Under the pieces are notes generated by a model that was not told where the DNA came from, made no database searches, and saw only the letters and a program-made list of their open reading frames with translations. A DNA stretch of 64,000 nt. Source: Paragordius varius. Lineage: Eukaryota; Animalia; Nematomorpha. This document shows, piece by piece, positions 8,001 through 63,200 of this stretch. The DNA is taken from assembly GCA_964247055.1 (NCBI GenBank), contig OZ176052.1, positions 2,108,001 to 2,172,000 on the forward strand, given 5' to 3'. The position numbers and the translations under genes are program-made. The first letter of the stretch is position 1. Each line of letters opens with the position of its first letter.

Positions 8001-9556
8001 TAGCTACTTTGGTTTTGTAATGTTGTACTTTTATTATTACTGTTACCACTGTAAGTTCTAGAATCTGACCTCTTACTCCCCATCATCATATTCAGAGTAT
8101 TTGTTGGTGAAGGAGAAAGTTTTGGTGTATTCATAATAGTAATCAAATTAGTAGATGAAACTGTTGAAAGTAAGGGTGAAGAACTATTCGTAATTGGTTG
8201 TTGGCTTTGTTTTTTATTATTAACCAGGGCCTCAAACAGCTTTGATGATGAATGATTTTCAATTCGAGATTTCAATATTTCATCACTATTATCAACAATG
8301 TTTGAGGTCGAATACTTGAATATACTTTCTGCCTCTAGATTTCGGTTGATGCGGTCCGCCAAAGGTGAAATGGTAGAATTTGAGTTAGTTTGAGAGGTGT
8401 AGTTTGCTGCCTTTCTAATAATGATTGAATCTCTCACTGCATTTTTATCATGGTTAGCCATGTATGATTCTCTGTGATTTGCCTGATATAGCTTAGTGTA
8501 TTGTTTTAACAAACGTTCATCATTATCGTCATGGTTTAGTGGTGGGACAGGATTCATTGATGAGCTACTAGATGCCAATTGTGATTGATGCATTTTTAAA
8601 TGATTTAAGAATTCCATATCATTGTCACGCAAACTTGTCAAGCAAATGGGACACTTGGTTATATTAGACGACGGCTCTTCCACACATTTATCCATATTAT
8701 TAATGAGTGATAAGGGACCATCATGAATATTCTGATTTGAGTGGGCATTAGCTGCTACGATTAAGCCTACTTTATTTATCTCATTTATTATTTGCTCAGA
8801 GTTTTTATTATTATTGCTGATGTGGTTGTAATTTAAGCCAACTTTTTTAGTAGTAGCAACAGCAGTACCAAACATTGCTGCAGTTGTTGTGTTAAAGTTA
8901 TGTACCATTTTCATGTGCTTATCATAAGCATTTTCCGACATAAAGAATGCTTCACATAAATCACATTGCCAATTCATAGAGGATGACGGACTCGTTATTA
9001 TTTGACAATTTTTATTAGGATTGTTTTGCTGTACGTTGCCGTTGTTTATGTACAATTTTAATCTTTTACTGCTAATACCATCCAACAAATCTTCTTGAGA
9101 ACTGTGGTTTCTATGTTCCTCATCATTAGTAACATTTGAATGTCCTTCTTCTGTATAATTACTACTACTGGTCAACAATGCATTGTACAAACTACTTTTA
9201 TTGCTATATCCATTATTTGTTGCATAAGAATTAACATTAGAATTAGAATTTAGAAGTAGAGAGTTGCTAGAAGAAGGATACGACGAAACAAAATTAGGTG
9301 ACGCTTGTGGTACATTGCTGCTGCTATTCGTGTTATTATTAATATTGTTGTTGTGGTTGGTACCGTTAGAAGCAAATAAGGTAGAATCTCTCACATGATG
9401 TCTGTAATCCAAGTGTCGTTTTATGCTTTGCTTATATTCAGAGACGAAATCGCACAAAGGACATTTGTAATTTAATTTGGCCGGCATACCAGGGGTCGTG
9501 GACGGTACATGTACTTTACTTATGTTGGAGATGATTGCATTAGCAAACATATTCAT
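5069..9556 (-). CDS. Multi-C2H2 zinc-finger transcription factor with about 11 dispersed fingers and Asn/Ser-rich linkers; one large exon
   Basis: 1527-aa ORF with C2H2 motifs such as CPLCDFVSEYKQSIKRHLDYRH, CSVCDFKTVNPSTYERHRKRH, CGYCAYSTKWSCDLRMHYKNRH and CIYCHLSFGYAINLRIHLKRVH. The ORF tail after ...VAVKT (FFSKKKLF...) looks like intron read-through past a GTATTT donor at 5068. Confidence 0.85.
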
Positions 9557-12500
9557 TATAAATTAAACTTTAGAGTTTTTTTTACAATAAAGTTTCAAGA
9601 AATTTCGTAGTTTAAATTAATGTATAAATCTTTTAGGCAAGGTAGACTGAAGTTAAAACAAAACGGACACCATTTAGTAATTTTGCATTTGAATGTTGAT
9701 GTAGTAGGGAAGGGAGGGAGTATCGGAGTTAACAAAAACATTAACTTTAACATTATTATTATTATAATTATCCAAGGTGAGATGAGATGAATAGATTTGA
9801 TGAATATTATTGTGAGTTAGTTTTATATATGTTTTATCTTTTTTGTATCGTTTCGTTAAATATTACTACTTACTAACATTGTCGTTCGTCGGTGTTGGTA
9901 ATGTTGGTTGGCCTTGTAAAAAAAAAGTTAGTTTTTTTTCTTCGTTTAACAATTTTTTGTCACACTTCTCTAGCAACATTTGTAAAAGAATAAAATGATC
10001 TGAGCGAAAAGGGGCATTTATTATTTATCATTTTGGTTTTGAGATAAATCCAATTTAAAAAATTCGGTATTATTGCTACGCAACTAGAATTCAATAATAC
10101 ACCTTTAAAGTGGTAGTAGGGTGGATTTTTATGCTTATTTCCCTTATCGCCATAAATTTTTTGAAAGTCATCATCGCTCAATCCTTTTTTTTTCAATATA
10201 TTTTTTTATCTGATACCGCCAATTTTTTACTTTTGCAATTGCAATTGCATATAGAGAGGAGGAGGAGAAAAGAAAGGTATAAATGTAGTTAGTTAGCTAT
10301 CTAGCTATATAGTAATTATATATATTTGAAGTTTTAATGGTGCGCGTTGTTTGTGCATTTTTTATAGTTTGAGGCAATGTAGTGTGTAGAAAATACCACC
10401 CATTTTATCATTTATCATATTGTATTGTAATTCATTATTAATATATGTATATTTTTGTTCCACCCTTGTTCTCATCATCGTTTAAACTGTGATCGGTGGG
10501 TGCTCAATGATGTTTGAAGGGGAATGAATTTTGTTTTTTTCAATATAATCATTATCATAATTTAACTATTTGAACGATAAATTTTTACAATTGAAAATTA
10601 AGCAAAGGTGCTTTTACCATAGGCGATAGTTTTTTTCATATGTGTTTAATATTATCATACAGAATAGTTGATGTTATGGTTTATTCTTATAATATATCCT
10701 AGAATACAGAATTGCTAGAAATCTATTAAAATGTTGCAGATTTCATTGTTGTTTCGAAAAATTTGGATAATATGTTTTCTTGGAATAATTGCGACACAAG
10801 AGAAGCATATTTGAATTTTGCCGTTGTCACTGTGCTGTTCTTCTATCTATCTATGCTACTGTAAGAATATGCAAGGGGATATGAGATGATGAATGATTTA
10901 ACAAAAAATAATCGGATCTTTTTATTTCTTTGTCGTGTTGCGTCTTTAGTTATTTTTCTTTAATATATCATATAATAATAATAATCTCTCTTATCATGAC
11001 TGCGATTGAAAAATATTTTATATTGTATATCTAATAATAAAAACTCTAGTAGTAGTTGGTTGGGTATAAAATACTGGCACAAAGGGAGGGAGTATGGATG
11101 CACACTTGAATTTGCAAAAATTCTGTCATCATTATATGTTTTAATATTAGGATAGAAATATTAGGCCGATAACTGTTTTATTTTTGTTAACTGTTGTAAC
11201 AATATTTGTTGCGCGCATATAATCTTTGAATTTCTCTTTCTTTCGTTTTGTGCTATATTTCTAATAGTTATTGGATTTCACATATATTATTATATATTAT
11301 TTGTATAATCCCAGAAAAAAAAAGATGATGGGATGATATCAGCAACAATATAAAAATTGGAATGTTCAATTGATTTTGAATCTTTTATAATATTTTCTGG
11401 CTTGCAAAATTTCTCCTTGATCGACGAATATAATTGGTTTATATTTTTTGAGGTTCGTTCTTGCCTACCTGTAAATATTAATAATTAGAATTAATAAATA
11501 AATAAACAAAAAAATTCATTTTGTGTTCTAAATTAGGCATAAAATAACATTGAAAAACACATATTCTGGCAAAGGAAAAGGTTAATATATAAAAAAACAT
11601 ACACATAACTTAAGTGTAGATAGATAGATAGCTTAGCTGTATATATAGTTAGATAAATTAAGTAAATAGGCGCAATCTCAATATGCTCAAGGTTTTTTAA
11701 CAACTATATTTTGCTTTTCATTTTAAATTTTAATTTTTTCCCTTGATTTTTTTAATAAAAAATAATTTGAAGTAACGAATCGATTACCTGTAAATAAAAA
11801 CAAAAAATGTTTTTCTTGGTATGTTTAGTGCGCTAGCAAATGTTAAATTTTAAAACGATAAAAATTTCATGGTAATGAAAATAGATATATTTTAGCTATC
11901 TGAAATTTTTATATTTAAACTTCAAACTGAAAGCTGGATTTTCAGTAAAGATACTATGCTAAATTTCTGGAATATAGCGAAAAAATAACGATATAGTTAG
12001 TTTATCAATGCGTAAAATACATGATGAAACCAAAAAAATTATACATCAAGGTTATCCTTCACTAGTATGCTATTCATTATTGTGTTTTCACAATATAACT
12101 TTAATTCTTATGTAAGTTGGTGTTGAAGGCAGCGCCTTCAATAGTTAATCACATATTGTAAAAAATTGAGTATAACGGTATATTAAATATAAAAACCACA
12201 TTATTTTAAATCAAAATAAAATGCTTATATTTGTTTTTATAATAAACATAAATATTATTGACCAAGGGTCATAAATATGTTGGTAGAAATGTATTTATAT
12301 ATAAGCAAGTTTATTATTTGGTTTCTCTTTCTTAAATTGTACATACTAAATCTGAGAAAGATAAACTAAAATACTTCCGCATATACAATTAGTTTTTCTA
12401 TTTACAAATCTTAAATTTTTTATGACCAAATCGCATACTATGTCTGTTAGGGTGTTTAAGGCATAAAAAGCATGTGAATATTTTCAAGTTGAAATCCAAC

Positions 12501-36973: not shown

Positions 36974-37382
36974 CATTGCTAGTTTTCAATTAATTTTTGC
37001 CAGATAAGCATATCCAGTATAGGGGAATATTATTTTTTCACTTTTTACTAATAGTAAAAACTGAAATTATACAGACAAAGGTAAAAATATAAAGTCAAAT
37101 TTTTTTTCAAAGACAACCATACTTTTTGAATCTTGTTATATCCTATAAAAATCATTAATCACATAATTTATTGTGATAATATTGTACATCTCTATCTATA
37201 CTGTGCATTTTAAAACAATGAGTTATATTTAAGAAAGTATAAAAAAAGTATGGTTATCTGGAAAACAATATTTGTCCTTATCTTTTTATGTTTTGTCCGT
37301 ATAATTTGAATATACTGTATTAACCAATAATATGGCTCTTTGCTACATATGCTATCTGGCAATATATGAAAAATAGCAATAT
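36974..37382. mobile_element. MITE family C copy interrupted by a family B MITE
   Basis: The flanks cattgctag...ttttttcactttttacta and ...ctttgctacatatgctatctggcaat...tagcaat join up to match the uninterrupted copy at 59400-59558. Confidence 0.7.
37051..37317. mobile_element. MITE family B copy nested in family C
   Basis: ...agtaaaaactgaaattatacagacaaa...ttttgtccgtataatttgaatatactg|TA. Confidence 0.75.
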
Positions 37383-37591: not shown

Positions 37592-40500
37592 TCATGTACG
37601 ACTTTTTTCAACAGCCACTTCCAGCGATATATAAACATCGCATCGAAAGGTATCCATTAAGCTTTGACTAACTTTATCACTAATTTTACGGATTCTTTCC
37701 CCACTAGGACCAATAATTATTTTCTAAAATTAATAAAAATACAGAAAGAAATAAAAAAGCATGTATGCATGATATATAAAATTCGAACTCCAAAACGATT
37801 TTGTAATCCAATGACTTATTAGGTTGCTTTTAAGAAAAAAGCCAACGTTCAAAATTAGTTTAAAACCAATTATCGTAAAATTTTAATTATTAAAATCCAT
37901 TCTTAGAGAAAATTAAAAGTTACAAGTATGTTACCACAAATTAATCATTTTTTTGCTTAATTTAGATTTCTATTATATAAACTAAAATTAATATATTTTT
38001 TTACACAAAAATTCATCTATTAAAAAGTAAAACCCTATAATATAAGTTCATTATGAGAGATTTTACCATTAAGTTGTCTTTGGGGCATTTGATACTAGCA
38101 CGAATACGTAAAAGCCCAGATTCTTGTATGTAATATTCAATTATTTTCTAAAAATATTATTACAATTAATTATATTTTATAATCAAATAAAATTTATTAA
38201 AATTAATAAAATCAACCCTCTCATTTATAACATTGGAAAAAAGCGAAAACGGCTATTTTAACCCTAAAAACCGTCTATTATATTATTTTTTTGAGTCTTA
38301 TAAAAATACTTATTAAAATATTTGATTTTCTAATGATATGGTTTTTAAGAATCGATAACATAAATGTTTTATAAAAAAAACCTTTTTTATCCTATCAACC
38401 ATATTCAGCAGTTACATTTTTAAAAGGTGATAATCATTATATTGGAATAAAAAGTTGAAAAATCAGTTTTTTTACTGTGAAAAAAAAGAGCTACAACAAA
38501 AAGAATTAACTCACACACAATTATTTTAAATGTACAGTAAAAATTGAGATTTTACGGACAAAACGTAAAAAGACAAATATTTTTTTTTGGTAATTCGCTA
38601 TATTTTTTTAAACTTTATTTTCTTGATATCAATTCCTTGTTTTAAATTGCCTAAAATAAAAATGTATATTGGTTACACAATCAATTATATGTAATTTACA
38701 TTTATAATTATTTATAAAATAAAAATTAAGGTATAAGTATGATGTATTTTGAAAAACATATTTAGTTTTCTATATATCCTTACAATGTTGAGTATGTATG
38801 GTATCTGGAAATTTAAATGGTTTAATAGCTCTTGTCGTATGGCATCAATGACAATTTGTTCTGGTTGCTGATCTGTTACATATTGACTGTTATATTTCCA
38901 AGCTTGGTAAGGGGCTTCACACATAAGACAATCCTTAAAAATAAAAATAAATCTTAATTTAGATGCAACATTAAATTTTTTAAAAAGTATTTATGACAAA
39001 AAAAGATCCATTTTACAGTATTATAAAAACAAAATGTAAAATACAAGTAAAAAATGAAATTATATGGACAAAACGTAAAAATATACTGACAAATATTTTT
39101 TTCAAAAGACGACCATACTTTTTAAATCTTGATTATTTTAATTATAACTCATTATTTTAAGAGAAAATGTATCAAATACAGATGTAAATAGATACATCAA
39201 TTTTATTTTATACAATGGTAGGTAATTATCATATGTAATATTAATGTATAAAAAAGTATGGTTGTCTTTTAGAAAAAAATATTTGTCTTTATATTTTTAC
39301 GTTTGTCCGTATAATTTCAGATTTTACTGTATATCGTAAGATACATTTATATGCCAAAAAACTAATTTTACATTAATTCAACTATAGCGATAAAATATAA
39401 AGAGTAAAAGACGCATATTTTTAGTACAGAAAACTTATTTTTGATGATTTTTTATAACCTATATATTATCAAATGTGAAATATAAAATTGAGTGTAAACA
39501 ACCAATTTATATAGCTACGCCTTTATTCATAAACTAAAACGATAGGTTTTTTAATAAACATTAATATATTACATGATTTTCATAGAAAAAAAGATTATCC
39601 TTTAACTTTTAAAAGTTTTGTGCCTTGTAATTTCAATTAATTCGCATTGTATTTTTTAAGGCTTAAAAAATTACCATTAATTCATCTAAGCCATCATTAT
39701 CAAGAGCAGAAACCATAAATATGGAGTAAAAATTTGGCCAGGATGTGGATTCACGTTTCAAAGAATTTGGTTCAAGCGGTAGATTTTTAGCGTCTAAAAA
39801 GCAAAAAAGCATTAACAATCGTTAAATTTTTCGTCTCTTTTTCTAAAAAAATTATCTAACTAATAAAAAAAATTCATTGTTTTAAATTGTGGACAATATA
39901 GAAAGATCACAGAATAAAATATTTTTGATATAATTTTTATATCATATCAGAGCAGAAAATCACCCTATTAATTGCTCCCATTTTATTCTATGAGTTTTCG
40001 TTGCATGATTAAATTATATAAGCATTGAACATCGTTAATATTATACCTTTTTTTAATTACCACCAAATTTAATAAAATTAGAGTAACATTTAAAATTATA
40101 AAGATAAACAAATATTATTTTTTATAAAGAATACCATATTGAAAAAGTATTTTAAAAATAACTACCGTTTTGGATTGACAGTAAAAATTCAAATTATACG
40201 GACAAAACGTAAAATATAAAGACAAATATATTTTTCTAAAAGACAACCATATTTTTTAAATCTTGAGTTTTTTCAATATAACTGATAGTTTTAAACTGCA
40301 AATTATAAAATAGAAATGTAAATTGGTAGCACAATCAATTATGTAGTTTTCGATTGTAATTAAATATTTCATATACCAAAAATAAGGTTTAGGATGGTTG
40401 TCTTTTGAAAAAGTATATTTGTCTTTATATTTTTACGTTTTGTCCGTATAATTTCATCAATTTTTACTGCAAACATTAAAATTATGGTTTCCTTTGGAAG

Positions 40501-43500
40501 TATTAGCTTCTAAGTTTTATGGTTTGTTAAGTTTTTAAATTTAATTACAAAAAAAACCTTCAAATATTTTAGGATCTAATGATTCATGATTCGAATAAAC
40601 GAGAGAATTTGTTTTATCATGGACGTGATGTGATTTCATTATAGTTGGGATTGTTTTAGGCGACGCGTTAGAAATATCATCCTTTTCATTTATATAAATT
40701 TTGTCCTTTTCAGACATGTTAGGTTGATTGGTTTCCGAGTTTTTAACTGAGCTCATTTTACCAATCGTTCTACGGGCATATCTAAATTTATAATTGTTAC
40801 GGTGTTACACGCAAATTCTAAATATATACTTTGGTTGTATATCATAATTTTCTGTGAGATTTGAATTGTCTTATTTTGATATTTTTTTGTATTAAGTAAA
40901 TATTATATCCTTTGTTACTCGAAATTTTATGGTTAGAATGCAAATTATGATCACCTAAAAATAGTATATATAAAGCACAAAAAACCGAATAAACATCATT
41001 TCAAGTTTACGTTTTATACCCTTGTTACCTTTCTAACATCTGGTGGCCAAGACGAGTAACAAAAAAATATAAAAATAAGACAATTCAAATCTCACAGAAA
41101 ATTATGATATACAACCAGAGTATATATTTTAAATTTGCATGTAACATTACTTCACCCTTAGGCGAAATAATACTAGTTTGAATGAGAACATCATGTGTTG
41201 GGTGAGTCACGAATCATTTGCATAAGGTACATCATAGTTTGAAGGATAACATGTGTTGTGTGTGCCGACGGATCATTTGATCTATGGCTCACGCCATCCA
41301 TTTCTTGCTAAACTGGTCCAGTCGCACTGAAATACTATCGGCGCTGTGAGGAATCTGAACGGTATCCTTTTATAACGGAAACATCCTCTTAGCGTTGAAA
41401 TCGTACAGGGTGTAGCGTCTCTTTAGCTCGGCCTGGGGAGGTAGGCGTCTTACAGATCAATCTTGTTAAAAGCTTCTTGCGGTGAAATATTATAACTTTT
41501 GATTTTTCTATACTTGCCATTTAGGGTGCCCACTAACCTTTCTACCATCCCATTACTTTTAGGATGATAGGGGGTTACCCTCACGTGTTAATTCCCAAGT
41601 TTGTTATAGTGGTTGTTAAGTACGAAATATTGAAATAAGAAGCGTTATCACTTATTACCGTCCTCGGAAACCCAAACCTGACAACGGTTTCCTCGAGTTT
41701 GTGCAATATGTTTACCGAATTAACCCGTTTAAACATGAACCCTTCTGACTATTTTGATAAGCTATCAATCACCAACAACCAAAAATACCCGTCAACTGGT
41801 CCCGCTATATCGATGTGTAAACGCTCCCATATCGCAGCATTTGGATCCCATTGATAAGTGGGATTTTCACCTAGGCTTGGCTTGTTTCCTTAAGCTAAAT
41901 TGGCTGTACCTTCTTACCAAATCGTTCTCTAATTTTGGCCAAAAACAGGTAAACCTTGCCATTGCTTTCATCGTTTCTACATTATTACTGTGTAAATAAT
42001 TGACAACATTCGCCTGTAAGCTTTCTGGGATGATTATTCGATCGTTCAAACTTAGCAATCCATATTGGTACGAAATTTCTCCTTTCCGGTTCGTAAACCC
42101 AGCCAACTCAACATCACTCCAATCTTGATTATGAATAGCCTTGATTAACTTCTGCAACATTTTATCCTTAACTGTCTCTCTCCGGATCTCATCTCGACTT
42201 AAATGAACATTATGACAATTTAGGAACCTAAGATGTCTCGTTACCATGTAATCTCTATCAATTGTGTCAGTATTATCTTCACCGGGACATCTTGACAAGT
42301 AATCGGCTCTATTTTTCGGACCCGCCTGATACCTTAATTCAAAATCATAATCATTAAGACGGTTAACCCATCTTAAAACTTTCGAATTCTGAATTTCTTT
42401 CAAATTTCTATCCATATTTATTAACCTAACCAGTGGTAAGTGGTCTGTCAAAATTGCGGACAAGCTTTTAACAAGATTGATCTGTAAGACGCCTACCTCC
42501 CCAGGCCGAGGATACATCCTCTATGATTTCAACGCTAAGAGGATGTTTCTGTTACAAAAGGATACCGTTCAGATTCCCCACAGAGCCGATAGTATTTCAG
42601 TGCAATTGGACCAGTTTAACAAGAAATGGTCCAGGATGGCGTGAGCCATAGATCAAATGATTCGTCGACAAACCCAACACATGATGTTCTCATTTAAACT
42701 AGTATTATTTCGCCTAAGGGTGAAATAATGTTACATGCAAATTTGAAATATATACTTTGGTTGTATATCATAATTTTCTGTGAGATTTGAATTGTCTTAT
42801 TTTTATATTTTTTTTGTACTAGGTAAGTATTATATCCTTTGTTACTCGAAATTTTATGATTAGAATGCAAATTATGATCACCTAAAAATAATATAGATAA
42901 AGCACAAAAAACCGAATAAACATCATTTCAAGTTTACGTTTTATACCCTTGTTACCTTTCTAACATACGGTAAAAATTGAAATTATACGGACAAAACGTA
43001 AAAATGTAAAGACAAATATTTTTTTATAAAAGACAACCATACTTTTCAATCATTATTTCTTATATAAATTATTTAATTACAATCTTAAGTAACATAATGT
43101 GTGACTACACATCTCTATATCATACCAAATATTGACTTAAAAAATTATATTTTTGATAAAATTAAGATAATATAACAGTGATTACCAGCTGTGTAATGAA
43201 GAAATAATGGATTAATAACCCAAAAATGTATATTCTATCGAATAATGCATCCTAACAAAGTGTTTACAAAAACTAATGCATATATAACCTATTAAACGTC
43301 AAAAAACATAATTTCTATTATATTATGAACCTTAATTTTTCAAGCGCTTCTAGGTTACGTAATATTTCAGGTCTTTTATTTTCACATTCATCGCTATTTC
43401 CATTATCCCTTTGCTGCATATTATTATCATCAAATTTATTTGCAAACTTATCTTTCAGAGGTGTAAATTCAGGCGTTTTATTAGTCACTAAGATTTCGGG

Positions 43501-45187
43501 TTGCGATTGACCGCGAAAATATCCATTAGTTAAGCATTTCACTGTATCCAACAAAAGGGATTTAGGATGAATTAAATCAACCTATTATAAGATATGATCA
43601 ACATATTCACCTTCTTACATTAAAAATATTAACCATTTCTAAAATATTTGGATTGATAAGGCAAAAATATTATCATGAAAAATATGAATTGATAAAATAG
43701 ATAGTTTTTAATGTTGATATTTATCGTAAAATGCATATATGCAATTGTTGAATTTTAAACAGTCGGTTAAATTTTTTTGAAACTTTAAGGGTTATAAAAA
43801 ATATTTTTTAAATTTAAAACAATAATAATATATTTTATAAGAACTAACAAATTTTTCCAATCAATTAATATATATATATATATATAATTTATGAAAACAA
43901 ATCAATACTATAATTATTAATAAATGATCACTACAAATAAAAGCTAAACTTTCCTCTTACAGAAAAGAAATCTCGATTTCGTAAACTGTATAATATAATT
44001 AATTTTTAATAGAAAAATATCGAACATTGGATAAAATCTAAACAAGGTTATTAGTAACTAAAATTTTTCAAACAATAATTATAATCACATTATATAATAC
44101 TCTGATCTAATATTCTACCTTGTTTAGAATTAGTATCGATTTTTTATCCTTATTTTGTTCAAGAATATCCAGAGTTAAAAGATCTAATTTATGTCGAGTC
44201 CATATATTTGATGCATCCACTACCACACAAACTAAAATAATTCATTTCTTAATATATTAAGAAATTATTCCAATCAATAAAACAATTTTTTGACTTAAAT
44301 AAAGGAAAGAAAAAGGTGAAAATACATATATTTTTCGTTTTTTCTTAATTTTGACAAAAAGAATTGTTCTTTACCGTAAAAAAAGTATTTATGACAAAAT
44401 CAAATATTTTATATTGGTATGTTTATAAATCAAACATAATATTTTATTCATTCCGTATAGTCTAGATATACTTTTAATGATTAAAGAAGCATATAAAAAA
44501 TTTGGTATTCTAAAGAAAATAGCGCATAAAATGTTAAAAAAACTTTGTGAAAAACTATATTATCTATTATTTTTATTAAATTTTTAACAGTTATAATACC
44601 AAAATTTTTTAATATATATAGAATGACTTTCAGTAAAAAATAATTAAATTATCCATGATTTTATTTAATTTAAAAAATATTTACTGATATCGGCATCTTT
44701 TGCAGCGGTTTGCGGAAGGGTGGACATTTCAATATCAAGATTATGCCTATGCATTAATCCAAATAGTACTTTTTGCAATGCTTTTTGTTAACAAGGCCTG
44801 GTGTATCGTAAAAAGCTAATTGGATATCCTCATTGGTAAAAACTGAAACAATGTTTTTTCGGGTTGTGTGAACTTTTCTGGATTCGGATAAGACCTATAT
44901 AATAAATTAAAAATCGTATACCCTCCAATTCATAAGCTTATTTATTAAAGTAGATTTTCCCGAATTGGGTAAACCAATAATTGACACCTTAAGAAATTTT
45001 GCTTGATCAAATTGTTCTGGTGGAAGTTTTGACAAATATAATTGTTCATCTAAAAGTTATATGAATCGAAACTTTTAGTTTTTGGAATGGATTTCGTTAA
45101 AATTTCCTTATTTATGGTTTGACACTGGACGGAAGAATAGTTTTTAAAAATATTTGGAAAAATAATTTTCCATGCTTTTTGAAGCAT
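37592..45187 (-). CDS. ERAL1: Mitochondrial Era-like GTPase, 11 exons, about 499 aa
   Basis: Exons: 45073-45187, 44922-45049 (G1 GLPNSGKST), 44770-44894 (HTTR, DTPG), 44685-44746, 44119-44231 (..ILNK), 43331-43581 (VD..), 40558-40781, 39675-39793 (WPNF..VSAL), 38784-38933 (WKYNSQYVTDQQPEQIV..QELLNHL..IPY), 38067-38147, 37592-37723 (KIIIGPSGERI..LMDTFRCDV; KH domain). All phases are consistent and the exons total 1500 nt. Confidence 0.92.
38535..38700. mobile_element. MITE family B, truncated copy
   Basis: TA|cagtaaaaattgagattttacggacaaaacgtaaaaagacaaatat; the right arm is missing. Confidence 0.65.
39045..39329. mobile_element. MITE family B copy
   Basis: aagtaaaaaatgaaattatatggacaaaacg...gtttgtccgtataatttcagattttactg|TA. 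Confidence 0.8.
40179..40469. mobile_element. MITE family B copy
   Basis: cagtaaaaattcaaattatacggacaaaacgtaaaatataaagacaaata...tttgtctttatatttttacgttttgtccgtataatttcatcaatttttactg. Confidence 0.85.
40803..41038 (+). repeat. 5' LTR (236 bp)
   Basis: tgttacacgc...ctttctaaca; direct repeat of 42729-42965. Confidence 0.9.
41470..42462 (-). pseudogene. Gypsy pol fragment (RNase H end, linker, integrase), inverted relative to the LTRs
   Basis: ILTDHLPL, LRWVNRLNDYDFELRYQAGPKNRADYLSR, FWPKLENDL, WERLHIDIAGP, VISDNA and PYHPKSNGMVER on the minus strand, with stops and frameshifts. Confidence 0.88.
42729..42965 (+). repeat. 3' LTR (237 bp)
   Basis: tgttacatgc...ctttctaaca. Confidence 0.9.
42968..43050. 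mobile_element. MITE family B left arm, at whose terminus the LTR element inserted
   Basis: cggtaaaaattgaaattatacggacaaaacgtaaaaatgtaaagacaaata follows the TSD directly. Confidence 0.65.
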
Positions 45188-45278
45188 GTTTTTGCTGTCT
45201 GGTTTGCCTTAAGTCATAAATTCAGATGTGAATTGCGTATGACTTAAATATCAAAAATTATTTTTCAATTTTGCGATT
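45188..45278. promoter_or_regulatory. Putative 91-bp bidirectional promoter with a palindromic core
   Basis: Lies between the divergent ATGs of ERAL1 (45187) and the SLC38A10-like gene (45279). Inverted repeat ttaagtcata (45209-45218) / tatgacttaa (45238-45247), with an inner aattc/gaatt pair. Confidence 0.65.
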
Positions 45279-48200
45279 ATGGTCGATATAGATACCTCTC
45301 AAACCATTGTATTAGGCAATAGCATTATTGGTGTTAGCATATTAGCACTTCCATTTGCCTTTCAAAAAGTTTTTTTGTTATAAACTTTTGTAGTGTGGTA
45401 TTTTATTGGCCATCCTAATCTTTCTGATTGCTTGTTGGATAAATAAATCATCATGCCGGTTACTCATTCGATCTGCTGTGTTAACCAAAACAAATTCTTA
45501 CGAAGATGCATGTTAGATTTATATGTATAACTTAATTTTTAGCGAGTATAATATTGGGCTTTTCTGGATGCGTTATAACACAAATTAGGTATATTTTGAA
45601 TATATACAAAAATATAAACAGTTTAATCCTTTTCCTGTTTGGTATTTGTTCGGCTTACTTGATAGTTATTGGAGATTTGGTTCCCGAAGTTTTTTGTCGC
45701 ATGTTTGGATTACAAGTTTTTGATTATTTTAAAATTTTAGGATCCAAAAAGTACCAGAACATGGGTACTTTTATTTTTCTGTTCGGTTGTGATATTACCT
45801 CTTAGTTTTACGAACCGGATAGAACGAATGAATCGTGCCTCAACCCTATGTGTCATATTCTATATCCTTTTTACCCTTAAAGTATAATTATCATAATGCT
45901 TAAATATATTTTGCGAATATTTTTATACATCAAATATGCATTTAATTCTCATTTTTTATTGTTATTTCATAATATGATTTTAACAGAGTTCATTACTCAA
46001 ATCATTAAACCAAAAAAACTATAATATTTTAAGTTTTCTTTATATCATATTTTTTTATGTATAAACTCTATTTCATGATATTCATTGTTTTTTGTTTTAA
46101 ATTGCACATAAAAGGCAATTTTTCAAATTTTAAGAATTAGAGTTTATGTGTTCATATTTTTTTGTTATTCATATTATTTGGCTATAAATTTAAATAATTG
46201 CACTTACAGTCATGTATATGTAGAATTGACAGACGTTTTTAAATGATTATAATTTGTTTTTAATTGTAATGTTTTATATGTCAACTTTCAACATGCGCAT
46301 TTTTTAAGCATTAAAATAATAATAGCTTATTTATTGTAAACAATTAAAAACAAAGTAAAATCAATTATAAACGTATATCTGACAATTCTAAACATACATG
46401 ACTGTAAATTGAACCATTTCACCAGAAAATTGATCCTAAATTTGCAAAAAATATTTTAAGCCTATATCGGAATCAAAATTGCCTTAAAGGTCTTCTCATT
46501 ACAAAAATCTCCATAAGGGACGGGGATCATTATACTGGAATTCAGTGCACTATAATAATATATTATAAGTCCATAAATAAATTTATGTAATTTAGCTATT
46601 AAACGGTATTATTTAATTAATTCTATACATTTTGTGGTTTAAACATAGATTTTCTTTGAGGCATTACCCAAATTGGCTTTTCAACTTGATCAAATATTCT
46701 TCCAATTAACATTTTGGCACACGAAAGGATTATTGAATGCCCTACCTATTATAGCTTTATCCCTAACATGTCAAACGTAATTTAAATTTTTTTGGAATTT
46801 AAAGACTTTATTTTGTTTATTCAGGCGGCAATTGCTAATAATTTGGGTATATTTTCCTAAAAGCTAACTAGTCTGAAGGTATTTTTAAGACCTCATAATG
46901 AGTCAAAAACAATATTGAGCATTATGTTTGATTTTTATACAAATATATCTAAAATAATATCAAATTTTTAACATTTTTTTGACAAAGAAGGGTTATGATG
47001 CGGATCGCTACATATATACCATATACACTTCGAATTCACGCTTGAACAAATCATAAAAATTCAAATTCACCCTTGAACAATTTAAAATAATCTTAAAATA
47101 AATTTGGTTTCTGATATTGAAAATTTCCTATATTAGGCATTTTTTTACAAAATGTAATTTCGTTCAAAATTAAAATAAAACTGAAAAAATAATAAACTAT
47201 ACCGTGGGTAAATATTTCATATTAATGATGAGTTATATTAGCTTAAAAACATATAATTTATTTTTAGGGTGAATTTGAATTGTTCGAGGGTGAATTTGAG
47301 TTGTAAAGGGTATTATTAGTCAATTTGCTGTATATAATAAAATAATTTTTGATTTTTAGACAATTATTTCTGGTATACCAAGCTCTATCACACCCAAACC
47401 AAAAACGAATGGCCCGTATATATAACAATGCCATAGATACATGCACACTTTTATACATATTGGTAATTATACATCCTAATCTAGACTAAATATTACTTTA
47501 ATCCTAATATAAATTTCCATGCGCATATACGCGATTTGCACTTTTGAAAATTACTTTTTTAACATTTGAGATTTAACGGTTACTTAACATCTGTAATTCA
47601 TTTTAAACTAAAATTTTATTTTTGGGTTGTATACTATCACAATTCATATAGTTAGACATCTACCATATTTCTTTTTCATTTTAGATTTTGTATAATTTTT
47701 TTCACATATTCAAAAATTATTGTTTCATATAATATATAAAAAAATAACAGAAATTATTAAAATATTTAAAAAATTTCATGATATTATTTAATACAATTTC
47801 CAAATTCACCCTTGAACAATTCACTTAAAATATGAAATTCTGCTTACAATCAATATAATGCTGAAAAAATAATAAACTATGTCGTAAAAATATATTTCAT
47901 ATTAATGATGAGATATATTATCCCGAAACACATAATTTAGAGTGAATTTGAATTGTTCGAGGGTGATATTGAATTGTAAATGGTATATAAATAATGGATA
48001 ATAACACTAGACAACAAATTTTAACTTTTTTGAACTGCCATTCTTGTAAATTTAATATTTATTTCATTAAAGTACATAATTAGTATATCTGAAAAGAAAA
48101 TTGGTCTAGTATGGAAGAATTTTTTTATATGAGAGGTTATCGATAATTTTTGGCCCCGATTTAACATTAAACTCGAAATTTCGAAAATTAAAAGTTTTAG

Positions 48201-51200
48201 ATATGAAGCCAAGTATTTTATATCATTCGAAAGAGCGCAAAAAACTGCATCTTTTAAATGGTAGTAAGTCATTTAAATCAATCGGATGTAAAAGTTATTT
48301 GGATTTAAATGATCGAAATTTTCAATCCTTAAATAAGTCAAGAATTTTCGCAGACAAACTAATTTGAAAATCATATAAATTATTTATTATAATTATTAGG
48401 GTTATATTAGTATTTAATTTAAAAAAAATGTTTGAAAAAGCTTTTGGTTTGCTTTTTTAATATAAATTATAATTATCATAAATATTTTACCTAGTGGATA
48501 CTAAAATGCATAGTTATAACTGTAAATTTATAACATAATGGCTATAAAAGATCAAAAATACCTTAAACTTTATTTTTATCAATAAAATTTTTAAATTATC
48601 AGCATTATAAAGAAAATAAATTAATATTGATGAGATGGTAGTTTTTAAAAAACAAAAAACTTAAAAATGGCTGTTTTGAGTGACATAAAAGCAATAAAAA
48701 ATGTTTTAATCTAAAAAACTTTCTTGTGTTATTCTTTTTGGACATTCATCACCATCTAAACAAAGTTTGAGCTATTTTCATCCATTAGTTTTAAAAATAT
48801 AATAATTAAAAAAAATGCTCTCGCTTCGCGCGTTTGTCGCTCTTTGTGTCCAATATTAACTGTCGATGTAATACATAATAGTATGCATTTTATAGAGTTT
48901 TTATTACTCTTTCGAATGATATATTACAAATGGGCATTACTTGTATATTTTGAAAGAAAAATATTTTTTAGTAAAATTTTGATAAAGAGGGCGCATAATC
49001 AAAAAAAATCAAATTATACAAAATTCTTCCAACGAGTTATAATTTTTATTTCAGATTTTCTGTTAAAATGATACTAAATATGAGAAAATTCAAAAAACTC
49101 GAATGGCAGAAAATTTGTTGTCCAGTGTAATTAACAATAAGTTTTGAATGATAAAAAAACTGTAAGAAATTATTCCATTAACATGTATATTGTGCAAATC
49201 ATTTTATTTGGAATGTTATTAAAGAGTGTAAATTAAAGTATTTAAATCTAAAATTATATTGTTTTAAGCTTGAATTGTAAAATGTCAATTATAAGCATTA
49301 CTACACCATATCATTCATTTATTCATTTATTAATTAAATAAGGTTGGTTTACTCGGTTACATTGCATTTGCCCCAAAACTCCTCCAAACTACTAACATTA
49401 ATCCCGATATAACAGCACCTTTGAATGGTTTGAAATCTTTGCCACCCCATACTACACTTTTTAACTCTAAACAAGACGATCAAATATTACATAATAATTT
49501 ATTGGAACTAAAAGGTGATATCCTTATAAATTTGAATGCAAACACTCAAAAAAATGTAGCAAATGGTCAATCATCCCTATTCTCTTTACTAATTACGGAT
49601 TTGATAACAATAGGTTTCGCCCTGAGTTGTGCACTGAGTTTTCCACTCTCACTCCTACCCTGCAAACAAACGCTTATGATTCTCTTGAATTGGTCGAATC
49701 AATATCCACCCAATAAAATTACCAAGAATAATGTAATTAAGGTAAGTTTTTTTAGTGGGGTGTGGTTTTAAAAATCTATAATAAGTGATAATTTAAAAGG
49801 TAAAATAATAGAATTCAAAAGGTAATATGATGGAAATTAGAAAGTTTATTAATTGATAGGGTGATCCTAAAATTTTGATCCTTTGATAATTACGAAAAAC
49901 ATAACAGTTTGTTTTTAAGATTTACATTGCTCGAAAAAAATTAAATTTTAAAACATATATAATGCTATATAATAATATATTAAGAATATTATATATTTAA
50001 TATTAATTAAGAATACTGTATTATACTTACATAAATGGAAATTTAGAATTAAATACCTGTTTAATTTTTTTTTAAAAAAACTACTTTTTAATCTATTATA
50101 ATTCAGCGGTGTTCTTAAGTTTACCCATTTTTTTATGCAATATGTATGGCAAAATAGCGTTATTCCTCAATTAATGATATAACAAGCCCCATACATATTA
50201 CGCATGATTCGATGATATCATTGGACGAAGAGGCTAGCCAAAAAATGCCTATATATCAACGAAAGCAACAACCATCCAATGATTATAGTATCAATTCTTT
50301 TCTTATAATTTTTTGTTTTGAAACTTTTTTTTGGGGTGGGGGGGGTCTTTCAATTAATTAAAATGATTTAAACTTAGAAGTGTTGAACACGTGGCCCGCG
50401 AGAAATTTAGATATAAAATTTTACGATCATCATCATGATAAAGGGTAAGCCAAAGATTTTGTACCACAAAGTAATTCATATTCATAATATTTATACTTTG
50501 TGGTAATCTGAGGCGATTTTTTTTACCTAACACATACCCTTGTGTGTACAAATATTGATTTAACTAATCAATAAAAACTGGCCTTTGCCGTTAGCGCATT
50601 TTCATGTCCCAACCAACACCGAGAGGTAGCCATAGGACTTTGCTAATTAAAAAAGTATTTGTAAACAAATATCCTCTGAGAAATATTTCCGAATTTTGGC
50701 AATCAACTTGCAGAAATGTTGACATAAATAGAAGTTTTTACAGTCTTAGTTGTAAATTCTAATAAAATATTCGTTAATGCCCATGTATATTCCAAATGCG
50801 GCCCGTGGAATTTTTTGATTTATAAAAATGCGGGTATCGCAGCCATTTGGACACCCCTGTAATAAGCCTTGCTTAAAAAGGGTTAATTATAAAATAGGCA
50901 ATTATCTAATCAACCATTTAGGTTCAATACTATTTTCTCAGAGTTTGGGCGTAAAATATAACGGACCTTTAAAAAATGACCGTTTTTAGTGTTACGCTCT
51001 ATTTGAAGAATTTTATTTTCTTTTACGCTTTATTTCATAAGTTTTATACTGGCTTCTGGTTTTTAAGTTAAAATTTAAATCATACGGACAAAATGTAAAA
51101 ATATAAAGACAAATATTTTTTCTAAAAGGCAACCACATTTTAATCTTGATTTTTTTAAATATAACTCATCTACAAATTATAATATAGAAATGTAAATTGG

Positions 51201-53998
51201 TAACATAATCAATGGTGTATTTTACGATTGTAATACAATGTTTTATATGGGATAAATTAAGGTTTAAAAAAGTAGGGTTGCCTTTTGAAAAATATTTTGT
51301 CTTTATATTTTGTCCGTATAATTTTAATGTTTACTGTAAAATATAGTTGGCCAATGTACATTTTTATTTACTACTGAGTCCCATGTAATACACTCATTTT
51401 ATACCATGAGTTATAGAGAACAAATCAATTAGTCCTATGTTAAAGCAATCTATGCATTCTTGTGGCGAAACGATAAATGATAGTTTGGAGAGAGTTAAAT
51501 ATTTTGGAGTTTCTCTCAACACACTGATAACCGTATTAATTGTCACATTTACTCTAATGATATCAATAGTGTTACCTAATAGTAAATATATATTGTATAT
51601 ACATATATATATATATATATATAGCATTTATAGTTCAAATTCACCTTTAAACATTATAAATTCACCTTTGAACAATTCAATTTACCCTTGAATAATTCAA
51701 ATTCACCTTCGAACAATTTAAATTTACCCTAAAATAATTTATGTTTTATTTATAATTAAATATTACTATATTTTTTTATATTTGTAAAAAAGAAATTTTG
51801 TATGTAATCTAAATAATACTTAAAAAAATAAACTTTTCCATAAAAATATATATAATTATAATGATGAGTTATATAAGACCGAAATTTCATAATTTATTTT
51901 TAGGGTGAATTTAATTTTTCGTTGGTGAATTTTGAATTATTCGAGGGTGAATTTAAATTGTTCAAGGGTGAATTTGAATTATAAATGGTATATATATCCG
52001 AACTTTTCATTAAGGCACACTTTTTGAAAATTAATTAAAAATATTAGGTTTGGCTTTTTATTTAATAACGGTAAATTGGTTTATAATATAGAAAGATGCA
52101 AATTAAGTCGCTTATACGATATATAATGTATATTGTTGTAATTATTTTACCAATGAAAATAAAATTTACTTTAAAATACTTTATTGAACATGTATAATTT
52201 ATTTTTACATACTCAATCAAGTTAACATTAACAAAGAATTAAATTTTGCTTTTAATGTAAATAAAAAGGAAAATTAAAGGCTTAAAGACTGAAAATGAAA
52301 TCGTTTATTGAACCTTTTTGCGAAATGTATCTCAAAATTCTAATTAAGGAACTTGTTAATTTTTTTTACAAAATAATTATAATTACATTTTCATATATTT
52401 TTGCGTTGTTTTAAAGTTGAAGATATGCTCAATATAATCGGAACATTGATGGGAACACTAATAAGTTGTATCATACCTGCTCTAATGTATCTTACCCTCC
52501 TTTCCAAAAGCCGTAATTATTCTCACTCTTTGATTAATATCAAAAATAATAACACCAATCATGTTGATTTGTTCAGTTTTGATAAAAATATCAATGGTTC
52601 AATACATTCCTTATCACCGATTTCTAATGCAACTACCCTCCCGATCACTGAAAGTTATGGGGATAAACGGAGAGCTCAGGTTTTTAATTTGATTCAAATT
52701 TAGTGTCGTTTATGTTGAAAAAGGTCACTTTTAATGAAAAAGGTTTATTAGAAAATTTTTTATACAAATTTATTTTTGTATAATTTTCATGTGCAGTCTT
52801 GTCTTTTCATACAATGCGGTTTGAATTTCCCATGTAAAATTTGAGATAATATTTCAGATTGTAAATAGCTTAGCAATGATAGATTAGTTAATATGATGTT
52901 GTATACATTGAAAGCTTAATTATTCGGTCAGTTATTTTTTTAGGTAAAAATTCATTCGATTATTTCCTCAGGCAAATTAATGCATTTTTGTGAAACATTT
53001 TTTAATTTTTGTGTCATGGCATCCTTACGAAAAAGCAATTCATCACTAATGTTGAAACTTTTCATACAGTTTTTGCAAAAAATCTAACTTCAACTTTTTT
53101 ATTTTGGATTATTAAGCAAATCAACATTTCTATTTATTAGCAGTTGGGCATTGATTTGAATGTAATTTAGGATATTGCTGCTTGAAACTTTTTTTAAGTC
53201 GAATAAGTAAATTTTCCATTATGTTACTTAGTTGTTATCCCTCATAAAATATATTTTGTTTCATTATTTTTTAGCATTAAATACTTTCAATCGATCGATA
53301 TATATATGTTTATCTTACCTTTTCTTACTTTTATTCATTAGCGACCAAATATGGACAAATTAACACAAAAATATTCCTCTTTAGATTTTTATGGTTTTTC
53401 CATCTTGGTAAATATAATTTTTTACATCTGTCCGATCAATGTTTTAGATTCTCCTATTATCTGGCATTGTAATAGTATTATTTGGTATGTCTAATTACAT
53501 TCCGATTTGGAAAGAAAATGAAGCCTTGTTGCCTGCCATACCTTCCCATGTATCAGGACTTGAAAATAGTGCGATTGTATTGACTCCAAAAGTTTCAAGT
53601 TTATTCTTTTTCCCCCATATTTATAGCAATGAATGAATATGTAAAATTTTAATAATTTATTCAATTATTTAACGTAATTAGATGGGCATCTAAAATTATC
53701 TTATGCCACGGCAGTCAATGCATCCATAGATCGTTTACCTCAACAGTTTGTGCCAGAAAATTTGGTTCTTCCTGTCTTAGAAAAATCCCCTAACAATCTT
53801 GTTAATAATACAGCTTTGAATTTACAAAATAATTTACTACCTGATATCAATACTAATGTCGAAAAATCCAATGACGGTGATCATTTCAATATAGATAAAA
53901 ATACGGATGTTAAAAAGCCCTTCCTTGCGCCAACTCAAAATATACCCAAAATTGAATTATTAACCGTTAATAATAACAAAACAGCCATTAACTCTTGA
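45279..53998 (+). CDS. SLC38A10: SLC38/AAAP-family amino-acid transporter, SLC38A10-like, 13 exons
   Basis: Exons: 45279-45368 (LGNSIIGVSILALPFAFQK), 45394-45511 (CGILL..), 45543-45588, 45622-45715 (CSAYLIVIGDL), 45741-45881 (VILPLS), 46649-46776 (LPIIALSLTCQT), 47360-47462, 49343-49741 (VGLLGYIAF..SFPLSLLPCKQ), 50158-50287, 51417-51581 (..LPN), 52417-52679 (IEDMLNIIGTLMGTLISCIIPALMY), 53448-53598, 53682-53998. Phases are consistent and the motifs match SLC38A10 as recalled. Confidence 0.88.
46207..46404. mobile_element. MITE family F (CAGTCATGTA termini, TA TSD)
   Basis: TA|cagtcatgtatatgtagaattgacagacg...ctgacaattctaaacatacatgactg|TA. Confidence 0.75.
47017..47312. mobile_element. Foldback-like MITE family D copy
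   Basis: Arms are built from ~21-bp units ttcaaattcacccttgaacaa and their reverse complements; tacc...ggta termini. Confidence 0.75.
47800..47985. mobile_element. Family D copy with a shortened left arm
   Basis: aattcacccttgaacaattc...gtgaatttgaattgttcgagggtgatattgaattgtaaatggta. Confidence 0.7.
50375..50859. mobile_element. hAT-type MITE with a degenerate left end
   Basis: gtgttgaacacgtggcccgcg...gcggcccgtgg...tttggacacccctg. Confidence 0.6.
51065..51336. mobile_element. MITE family B copy
   Basis: catacggacaaaatgtaaaaatataaagacaaata...ttgtccgtataattttaatgtttactg|TA. Confidence 0.75.
51622..51990. mobile_element. Family D copy with about 5 tandem ~21-bp units in the left arm
   Basis: ttcaaattcacctttaaacat/tataaattcacctttgaacaa/...; the right arm is gggtgaatttgaattataaatggta and carries reverse-complement units. 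Confidence 0.85.
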
Positions 53999-60268: not shown

Positions 60269-63200
60269 CAATTTTTTAAATGTATAAGGTTGTTCAAATA
60301 ATGTGATATTATATTATACTGGATAATTATATTTAAAGGATTTAATAAAAATGTAAATATTATTATTAACTCATTATGATGTGTCTGTAAAACACCAACA
60401 CATTCATAAAATGATTATAACCTAAAAATATGACCTCATTAATAAAAATAGAAAAATTTATTGTAATGTCTGGTCTATTCTTAGTAAAATTAAAAAAATC
60501 TGTAAAAATTAATTAAAACTAACGCACATTTTGAGTATAAAATGTTATTATTATTAAAAAATTTATGCCAACCTGTAAAATTATCAGAGGGCGCTAAATT
60601 GCCCTCTTTTGTGATGACGACTCTCCTGTGCGTTGCAGCGTTCGCCGTTCCTGGTGGTAATAATGGTTCCAAATTTTTCAACAAATGATATTCCGAAATA
60701 TCCATACTTGTAAATATAAAATATATAAAATTTAAAATATCTTTATTTTCTTTTTTAATTAAAAAGATTGTACAGTAAAAATATAATATTTATAGAAAAA
60801 AATTAAAAGTTAAAAACTCTAGAGAATTGTTGTAAAATAAAAATCATATTTTTTGATTTTTTATGGTATTTATCGTGTTGAATTATAAATTAATTAATAT
60901 AAGTGTAAATTGTTATCAAAATTTCATATTTAACTTAACAATAATAATATAGGTTAAGATTATAAAAAATAGGTTTTTATATGCCAACTTGAAATATTTT
61001 ATAATTTTTATGTTTTTTTTGCCTTTATTTAATTACCGTTATAAAACAATTTATGGCCTACTGAGATTTTAGAGAAGTGGTAGAACGAAAAATTTGTTAT
61101 AGATGTATTCGTAAATAAATTTTATATATAACTATTGATGAGTTTTCCTAAAAAATTAGGCTTTCTTTGCGCCAAACATATTATTATTTGTATTAAACTT
61201 TAAAGTTTTTTTACCTTTATTTACCTTGAAATTTTAACCAAATATAATAATTTAAACTTACCCACAAATTTAAGAAGTTGTAAAAACGAGAAATTTTATA
61301 AACAAAAACGTGTATGTAAATTGGTAACAAAATTTTATATTTAAACATCACAATTGACAAGTTAAGACAAAAAACACTAAATTACAAGATTTTCTTTACC
61401 CAATCCTTTTTATTTTCCATGTTTTTGCCTTTAGGTTTAACTAAAATTTTTATCGTACCATAATGTAATTGAATAAAACAATTTAAACACACAACATACC
61501 CAGATTTCAAAGAAGTAGAACGAGATAATTCCCCGCTTTCAAGTTCTGTTGTATGAGGGCGGGAATGAATATCGCTGGCATTAGAGCTCCTTTCAAGGAT
61601 GGCCGTAGAATTTTTAAAGTAATCCAACTATCCAATATGTGTTATTAATAATATATATAATACAAATTTGATATTATCTATATAATTTAAAATTCAATTT
61701 CACCCTTAAAGAATTCAAATTTACCCTCGAACAATTCGAATTCACCCTCGAACAATCCAAATTTACCCTTAAACATTATATATGTTTTTTAAGACTAAAA
61801 TATCTATATTTTTTATAAATAAAATTTTGTTTTAAATTGAAAAAATTCCAAAAAAAATAACAAACTATGCCATAAAGATATATATTTTATATTATGAGTT
61901 ATTTCCCGAAAACACAGAATTTATTTTTATAGCGAATTTGATTTGTTCAAGGGTAAATTTGAATTGTTTAAGGGTGAAAATTGTTCAAGAGTAAATATTG
62001 TAAATGGCATAGATATGTATATTGTGAAAACTCGTTGTTTGGATATATATATATATATGTCAATTTCAACGATCATTGTATTTTACAGAAAAATAATTTT
62101 GGAAAATTTAGACGTAGTATAGAGTAAAGATGAAACATATTTAAAGTTTTATTAGATATACGTAATAAAAAATAAATAAATATACAGTGCCCCATAAAGA
62201 TTCAATAATAAAAAAACACTTTTTATATATAGATCCGTAGAAGATAAAAATTTTTTTTATAAAATTAATTAAAAAATTATCTTAAAAAAGTCAGGATACA
62301 TTTTAATTATTTTAATACCATTATTCTACATTTTTTATAACTATAAAAATTATATATACAATTCACAATTAAGATTTTGAAATTGCTTATTTATCAATAA
62401 AACTATATTGTAGTTTTGCGATATTTTTTTTTAAAAATTTATAAACCTCTTGTTGATCCGTATATTCAATTCGTAGGAGTTTGGGGTTAGAGGAAGGCCA
62501 TTTTTGGTTATTCAAAGCATCATACGCTTTTATGGCAGATTCCATTTCAAGAAACTATTGAGTAATAAATAATTATAGAATCTCAATTATATTTATAAAG
62601 TATATCAATGTAATAAAAAACAAATTTTATAGTTTGAGATTTTGATTTTAAACAAAAACAATGTAATAATTAATTATTCCATATATTTAATTTAAACGAT
62701 CTAACCTGATCTATAACAGTGAATGATCGTATCAGAAACTTTTAATTAAATGTTTATTATCATTTTGTTTGATATAACCAAATTATTTTTTTGGTTTTTG
62801 TAGCAAAAATTAGGATTCACTAAATTATTACAATGTAGATCAGGGGTGTCCAACATAAATGCCCTCGCGTGCTGCACTCATAATATATTATACCATTTAC
62901 AGTTCAAATTAACGCTAAAAATACAATTCTAAACTAATTATATATCTTTATGGCATAGTTTATTATTTTTTAAGTATAATTTTTATTTTAAACAAAACTT
63001 TATTCTTTAGAAACTTATTAAAATATAGGTAATTTTATTTTTCCAGAACACATAATTTGAAGGTGAATTCGAATCGCTTAAAGGTGAACTTGAATTGTTC
63101 AAGGATGAATTTGAATTGTAAATGCTATGTATGGGCGTTTATGAATAATTTATTAGATTTCAAACATGAGAATACTGAAACATCTAAACGCAATATAATA

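Follow-up and report, generated by a model that had tools for sequence, protein, structure and literature searches.

The analysed DNA is a window of 64 kb from the horsehair worm Paragordius varius (contig OZ176052.1, positions 2,108,001 to 2,172,000 of the forward strand), with about 26% G+C and genes of animal type. Two divergently oriented genes occupy positions 37592 to 53998: an Era-type GTPase gene (ERAL1-like, 37592..45187, minus strand) and a gene for a transporter of the Aa_trans family (SLC38A10-like, 45279..53998, plus strand). Each opens with a run of tiny introns of at most 33 nt that is followed by far longer ones, and a survey of the assembly showed this pair to be a clear local case of a genome-wide layout and not a chance pair.

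Gene models were obtained by listing all GT...AG pairs that hold adjacent exon cores in one open frame, and exon-by-exon frame checks gave unique or near-unique GT-AG solutions for the exons of the window. In profile searches of the window genes, exons were used individually and the joined proteins never served as query. The frame-consistent model of the ERAL1-like gene comprises 10 exons, extends from the ATG at 45187-45185 to the stop at 37592 and yields a coding sequence of 1248 nt, equivalent to 416 codons including the stop. In exon-wise Pfam searches, MMR_HSR1 was matched by exon 2 (E = 1.4e-6) as well as by exon 3, and KH_2 by the last exon (E = 1.9e-5); this succession of an N-terminal Era-type GTPase domain and a C-terminal KH_2 domain supports an Era architecture for the predicted protein. 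The transporter gene consists of at least 12 exons, starting with the ATG at 45279. Its assignment combines a frame model with collinear but weak Aa_trans matches in exon 4 (profile 92-118) and exon 10 (profile 347-379), which score 17.7 and 16.4 bits against a cut-off of 25.6, and a genome-wide search with the Aa_trans profile did not recover this gene. The names ERAL1 and SLC38A10 were assigned in a preliminary description of the window and denote predicted orthology only.

The start codons of the divergent pair are separated by 91 bp (45188-45278, read from the sequence), and we infer that this spacer is probably the shared promoter region of both genes. Both 5' untranslated regions and both core promoters must therefore fit inside these 91 bp or overlap. 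Two CAG trinucleotides precede the ERAL1 ATG by 6-13 nt, and none is found near the transporter ATG; trans-splicing or overlapping transcripts are among the possibilities for the pair.

The first three introns of the ERAL1-like gene (all on the minus strand) measure 23 nt (45050..45072), 27 nt (44895..44921) and 23 nt (44747..44769). Intron 1 was chosen among several frame-keeping candidates as the GT-AG pair that leaves both exon 1 and the beginning of exon 2 intact; introns 2 and 3 each had a single candidate, intron 2 being in frame and containing a TAA. They are followed by six introns of 453 nt (44232..44684), 537 nt (43582..44118), 3565 nt (39794..43358), 741 nt (38934..39674), 636 nt (38148..38783) and 343 nt (37724..38066), all placed by the frame model. 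In the transporter gene (plus strand), four introns of 25 nt (45369..45393), 31 nt (45512..45542), 33 nt (45589..45621) and 25 nt (45716..45740) precede introns of 767 nt (45882..46648), 583 nt (46777..47359), 1880 nt (47463..49342), about 1700 nt (1665-1791 nt with ambiguous boundaries, ~49742..51490), 835 nt (51582..52416) and 768 nt (52680..53447) and a last, likewise ambiguous intron of ~83-197 nt (~53599..53681). The introns of this gene likewise follow from the frame model. Intron 3 is in frame and stop-free, so that its retention is possible on the DNA alone, and its removal is suggested by protein length only.

These models agree with the preliminary description in that the first three ERAL1 and the first four SLC38A10 introns are no longer than 33 nt and in that the layout is mirrored around one 91-bp spacer, with frame-consistent models on both sides. 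Later introns had been described as mostly hundreds of nucleotides to about 2.5 kb in size. This holds for most of them, but the largest reaches 3565 nt, of which 2.16 kb are a gypsy element, and the last SLC38-like intron is short. All tiny introns are contained in the first 368 (ERAL1) and 348 (transporter) coding bases, and the first long intron begins 503 bp and 603 bp, respectively, from the gene's own ATG. With introns in random order, both genes would have all their tiny introns ahead of the long ones with a probability of 1/84 x 1/330, or ~3.6e-5.

Splice signals of the tiny segments

All 17 tiny segments checked on DNA have GT...AG ends and lengths of 22-33 nt, and in every one of these cases removal of the segment restores one open frame together with conserved protein motifs, among them those of the Era G domain and of Ras, Rho and Arf domains. 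Segments of this size might alternatively result from errors of the assembly, represent DNA lost from somatic cells by elimination, or be translated or bypassed, and the 33-nt segment at 45589-45621, which is in frame and stop-free, could indeed be read through. However, two thirds of the tiny segments shift the frame or carry stops, and the invariable GT start and AG end within so narrow a size range and the recovery of conserved motifs also speak against these readings. We therefore consider it extremely unlikely that the segments are anything other than spliceosomal introns.

The donor sites differ between size classes. In tiny introns, the GT is followed by A or T and then mostly by T, and none of the 17 has GTAA; among 37 long introns, 30 begin with GTA and 17 with GTAA (p = 0.0004 for the difference in GTAA, in a small sample that includes window junctions picked by the analyst). 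A TAAC-like branch motif lies 8-12 nt before the AG in several tiny introns. A transcript search with exon 8 of the SLC38-like gene gave no match, and a search with a Rho exon returned only matches of 83-88% identity from many phyla, a same-species transcript not being found among them.

A RhoA/Rho1-like gene (G000:C5:8097180-8099342, minus strand, within 401-808 of the locus) has a 23-nt intron after profile position 47. In addition, its large exon contains an in-frame, stop-free stretch of 24 nt, which adds eight residues between the conserved motifs WTPEV and KHFCP and looks like a second tiny intron, one that would be invisible to stop-based checks. Several observations were also made on Arf-like genes, of which at least five copies are clustered within 0.2 Mb (G000:C5:1125946-1317278). 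In two copies of this cluster, adjacent exon matches abut in different frames with estimated gaps of -1 and -7 nt, which points to pseudogenes with frameshifts and not to introns. On two small contigs, two Arf-type genes without introns (G000:C10:1742354-1742869 and G000:C11:1307069-1307584) have identical scores of 256.6 bits and identical 234-codon frames, and may represent a recent duplication or uncollapsed haplotypes.

Tiny introns precede long introns

Intron sizes beyond the window were surveyed by profile searches of its own assembly (110.6 Mb, 44 contigs), in which the window corresponds to C3:2108001-2172000. The search covered 12 protein families (Ras, Arf, E2 (UQ_con), proteasome, CCT, ALDH, kinesin, myosin, Aa_trans, mitochondrial carrier, DEAD and actin) and provided exon-wise matches with profile coordinates. 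Neighboring matches on the same strand with consecutive profile coordinates were chained into genes, and intron sizes were estimated from the genomic gaps after correction for overlaps or gaps in the profile. The survey comprised 265-285 junctions in about 110 genes, and the size distribution refers to 265-267 usable ones. Splice solutions at the DNA level were determined for the Ras, CCT and ALDH loci, where the gap estimates equalled the best splice solution in most cases.

The 267 usable junctions fall into two populations, a discrete class of 20-34 nt and a broad class of about 50 nt to several kilobases. Thirty junctions have estimated sizes of 15-34 nt, none falls between 35 and 40 nt, two lie between 40 and 50 nt, and the rest are spread broadly from 50 nt to several kilobases. 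At the Ras, CCT and ALDH loci, 11 tiny junctions were checked on DNA, and for 10 of them a GT-AG segment of 22-31 nt was recovered. In this repeat-rich genome the tiny class is in the minority, with about 12-18% of junctions, and its members occur in runs not only in the window, where three and four are found in succession, but also in Ras, Arf, E2 and kinesin genes. Frame-shifting tiny introns were not found in the CCT, ALDH, proteasome and DEAD families.

Genes with tiny introns have them in a run at the 5' end, for the most part inside the first 120 codons, ahead of the long introns. This order was tested by shuffling sizes within genes that contain at least one tiny (<=40 nt) and one long (>120 nt) intron. 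In the strict set, tiny introns preceded long ones in 26 pairs and followed them in 4 (10 genes against 1; permutation p = 0.00085). In an extended set, to which in-frame tiny introns were added as inferred from stops plus 18-45 extra bases read through (with DNA for the Ras cases only), the ratio was 52:7 for pairs and 17:1 for genes (p about 0.00005). The bias persists when any single family is left out. The tiny fraction falls with codon distance from the domain start, from 40% (0-60) and 25% (60-120) to 5-7% (120-400) and 0% (>400), and with rank in the detected series, where it is 28%, 17%, 11% and 4%. In these analyses, coding or domain start served as a proxy for the transcription start when 5' position was measured, and junction detection was not skewed toward the 5' end.

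The preliminary description had envisaged a promoter-centred gradient of intron size and had named the absence of any association between intron rank and size across the genome as evidence for a chance cluster. An association is present beyond this pair, as the within-gene order tests are significant in a sample of ~110 genes and 12 families. A smooth gradient, on the other hand, was not found: across all introns of a gene, the two possible size orders are seen in 92 vs 80 pairs (p = 0.26), and the comparison of first with last introns gives 22:17. As the long introns show no order among themselves, the pattern is a switch between classes and not a gradient.

It could be argued that position has no effect at all and that the genome merely contains compact, all-tiny genes next to expanded ones, so that the window pair would be a chance cluster. 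Heterogeneity between genes is real: among 69 genes with at least two junctions, 5 have only tiny introns, 50 have none and 14 are mixed. It also affects a pooled association between tiny introns and genomic distance from the gene start (23/113 vs 4/117, odds ratio 7.2, p = 6e-5), which is in part a geometric artefact because all-tiny genes keep every donor near the start, and which was set aside for this reason. Shuffling within genes, however, removes gene-level effects and still gives p values of 0.00085 to 0.00005, and the order seen in the window pair itself has the very low chance calculated above. An absence of any positional effect is therefore very unlikely. A pooled association with codon position was rejected as well, since it is confounded by family (in the long-domain families alone 3/29 vs 3/88, p = 0.16); it was this confounding that led to the use of within-gene shuffles.

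Repeats in the long introns and near gene starts

Repeats were surveyed by comparing the region with the rest of the window and with 40 further loci from this genome, altogether 262 kb. The long introns contain two high-copy families, each with dozens of copies in this 0.26-Mb sample. Family A is ~290 bp long with inverted terminal arms of roughly 90 nt, family B ~300 bp with arms of 48 nt, and both show matches in either orientation. On account of these long inverted arms and the matches in both orientations, the families resemble miniature inverted-repeat transposable elements (MITEs), and they also share the other hallmarks of such elements, namely a length below 600 bp, many copies and no coding capacity. 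In the window, family A copies are located at 37053-37320, 38534-38775 (ERAL1 intron 8), 39046-39332 (intron 7), 40178-40470 and 42966-43098 (both in intron 6) and 51066-51340 (SLC38-like intron 8), and family B copies at 47009-47318, 47793-47993 and 51583-51997 (SLC38-like introns 6, 7 and 9) and at 61686-62016.

ERAL1 intron 6 also harbors a degenerate element of 2.16 kb (40803..42966), flanked by long terminal repeats (LTRs) at 40803-41039 and 42729-42966 that are 95% identical, with TACGG on both flanks. Its internal open reading frames (ORFs) give weak Integrase_H2C2 and rve_3 matches. By its structure, the element qualifies as an LTR retrotransposon, with Ty3/gypsy type predicted. The partial family A copy at 42966-43098 directly abuts the right LTR, and the retrotransposon may have inserted beside or into an older MITE copy.

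Repeats cover 41-53% of four long introns (ERAL1 introns 7 and 8 with 46% and 41%, SLC38-like introns 6 and 9 with 53% and 48%) and 9-22% of four others; these figures are lower bounds, because so small a sample reveals only high-copy families. The preliminary description had the later introns hold the MITE and LTR insertions, which is the case for about half of them; in ERAL1 introns 4, 5 and 9 and SLC38-like intron 10, no repeat was seen in the 262-kb comparison. Likewise, a 3.1-kb zone centred on the shared promoter (43099..46203) has no repeat match in this sample.

The 95%-identical LTRs, the 5-bp TACGG target-site duplication and the dozens of copies of MITE-like families with long terminal inverted repeats point to secondary insertion, and it was shown, as read from these sequence features, that MITE-like elements and LTR retrotransposons have enlarged long introns secondarily. 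One scenario that builds on this clearly secondary origin holds that the compact state is ancestral and that only the distal introns expanded later. We regard it as quite unlikely in this form, although the proposal that secondary expansion by transposable elements (TEs) spared the promoter-proximal zone finds support in the data on repeats near gene starts.

These data come from 26 Ras and CCT genes anchored at their N-termini, 19 of which have both proximal and distal intron sequence. On average, repeats make up 1.6% of the intron sequence that lies up to 750 bp from the coding start and 15.5% of that beyond 1 kb, and are thus ~10x rarer in the proximal part. Gene by gene, 10 genes have fewer repeats proximally and 2 show the opposite (Wilcoxon p = 0.012). 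For non-exon sequence as a whole, coverage is 0-7% up to 750 bp and 10-30% at distances above 1 kb. On the upstream side, the 250 bp next to the coding start contain 1.9% repeat compared with 15.7% farther upstream, with 17-18% at -1000 to -500. Gene starts are thus generally poor in repeat insertions, with ~0.75 kb around them nearly repeat-free.

Possible origins of the layout and parallels in other animals

The best explanation, and in our view a fairly probable one, is a genome-wide layout of two intron classes in which distal introns are enlarged by TEs, insertions near promoters are not tolerated, and splice sites are recognized by intron definition in one class and by exon definition in the other. 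According to this model, introns near the promoter would remain unique in sequence or shrink to the shortest length that the spliceosome can remove, their splice sites being paired across the intron. Farther from the promoter, insertions would accumulate, and recognition would proceed across the exon. Because the two genes of the window would share one 91-bp promoter region, the protected zone would be mirrored on both sides. The preliminary description had offered two splicing regimes within single genes as an alternative to TE exclusion. The discrete size classes and the differing donors (see above) agree with this, and the coexistence of two recognition modes in single genes is plausible in the light of these sequence features. 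The evidence also fits a balance in which promoter-near introns shrink to a minimum and distal ones are inflated by insertions.

Several observations weigh against this explanation. Only 34 of 112 genes have any tiny intron in the covered region, many genes have long first introns, and 50 of the 69 genes with two or more junctions lack the tiny class altogether. In at least three genes, tiny introns come after long ones. The clearest exception is a myosin-head gene (G000:C5:4357115-4362715, minus strand) with introns of in-frame ~30, 883, 28, 520, 32, in-frame ~27 and 437 nt; the others are a Ras gene at C3:8847802, whose last intron measures 31 nt, and a kinesin exon at C1:10686499 with an apparent in-frame 30-nt intron after one of 593 nt. 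Long 5' introns are likewise repeat-poor, so that TE exclusion alone does not make an intron tiny, and ERAL1 introns 4 and 5 are long and repeat-free and lie within 1.6 kb of the promoter. The data themselves add to these points: the sample consists of 12 conserved families and not of the whole gene set, the in-frame introns of the extended set were recognized indirectly, and at all loci other than Ras, CCT and ALDH the sizes were estimated from exon-match coordinates, which alone define the kinesin, Arf, E2, proteasome, myosin, carrier, DEAD and actin junctions.

The repeat-poor state of long 5' introns has a second consequence, since a tiny size left unexplained by TE exclusion could reflect the splicing mechanism instead of TE history. 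Tiny introns with weak donors might be removable only as long as they are proximal to the cap or the promoter, for example through the cap-binding complex or early RNA polymerase II, and repeat depletion would then be incidental. Their nature as a discrete size class with a weaker donor and their confinement mostly to the first 120 codons accord with such a mechanism, and a functional or processing reason is also favored by the authors who described the flatworm case (PMC6530080). Against it stand the tiny introns at 1.5 and 2.4 kb from the start of one myosin gene, the one at codon 247 of an Aa_trans gene and the one that forms the last intron of a Ras gene, and on balance we judge the mechanism rather unlikely, though a serious competitor of the best explanation. 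Its strongest version, namely that the spliceosome of this animal removes weak-donor introns of 22-33 nt only in a cap- or promoter-proximal window, and that the size class marks a position-dependent splicing mode that arose independently in flatworms and in this ecdysozoan lineage, is an unlikely one. The Aa_trans gene in question is a paralogue (G000:C3:10906496-10907708, minus strand) with exons of 242 and 187 codons and a single intron of ~22 nt at profile position 247; this tiny intron lies more than 700 nt from the domain start, and no long intron precedes it.

Comparable layouts are known from flatworms. In the fluke Opisthorchis felineus, intron lengths peak at 37, 90 and ~3000 bp (Ershov et al., 2019; PMC6530080). 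The microintrons of this species, other flukes, tapeworms and Macrostomum adjoin one another in clusters, preferentially near the transcription start or 5' end, for which intron versus exon definition was proposed as the reason (PMC6530080). The horsehair worm shares with them a discrete short mode, adjacent runs and a 5' preference, its classes being 20-34 nt, ~50-120 nt and hundreds of nucleotides to kilobases. In contrast to O. felineus, the tiny class is shorter, with a mode at 22-25 nt instead of 37. Moreover, microintron splice sites are reported to be nearer to consensus in O. felineus, and the tiny introns described here have a weaker donor, as judged from the small sample in which GTAA was counted. 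In Gyrodactylus salaris, a mode of ~32 bp dominates ordinal positions 1 and 2, with other introns from position 3 onwards (Hahn et al., 2014; PMC4040987). The dependence of the size mode on ordinal position is common to both species, but the second mode of G. salaris is at ~58 bp and its mean length falls with rank, whereas here the switch leads to repeat-carrying introns of hundreds of nucleotides to kilobases.

Animal introns of less than 30 bp have been published only for myxobolid myxozoans and Dicyema (Hadjez et al., 2026; PMC13644364). Their introns of 22-27 bp, with splice signals reduced to ~GTa...AG, resemble those of the horsehair worm, and short introns there have short neighbors, without a 5' bias being reported (PMC13644364). 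In Myxobolidae and Dicyema the median intron is tiny and the genomes are compact, unlike the horsehair worm with its repeat-rich genome and its tiny class that is in the minority. As a general rule in eukaryotes, first introns are the longest (for example PMC6424223, PMC4085337). A dependence on rank is common to both patterns, and its direction is reversed in genes with tiny introns.

No paper was found in a search of the literature on intron sizes in horsehair worms. The layout is therefore known from flatworms but appears to be unpublished in this lineage, where the introns are shorter and the donors weaker than reported for flatworms. Runs of 5'-clustered microintrons followed by long TE-rich introns would then have originated two or more times among animals, convergently here and in flatworms, and the present genome has the shortest intron class seen beside kilobase introns. 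Such convergence makes the cause accessible to comparison, with insertion tolerance near promoters on one side and a position-dependent splicing mode on the other, and the divergent pair with its common 91 bp offers a compact natural test bed. For genome annotation, gene finders that require introns of at least 40-60 nt will fragment or misinterpret the 5' ends in roughly one third of the genes of this genome.

At the other end of the scale, positions 4976-9562 of the window (minus strand) carry one uninterrupted ORF of 1529 codons, which codes for an asparagine-rich protein with scattered C2H2 zinc fingers and weak ZNF462-type matches. This gene is long and intron-free in a genome in which the others are heavily interrupted.

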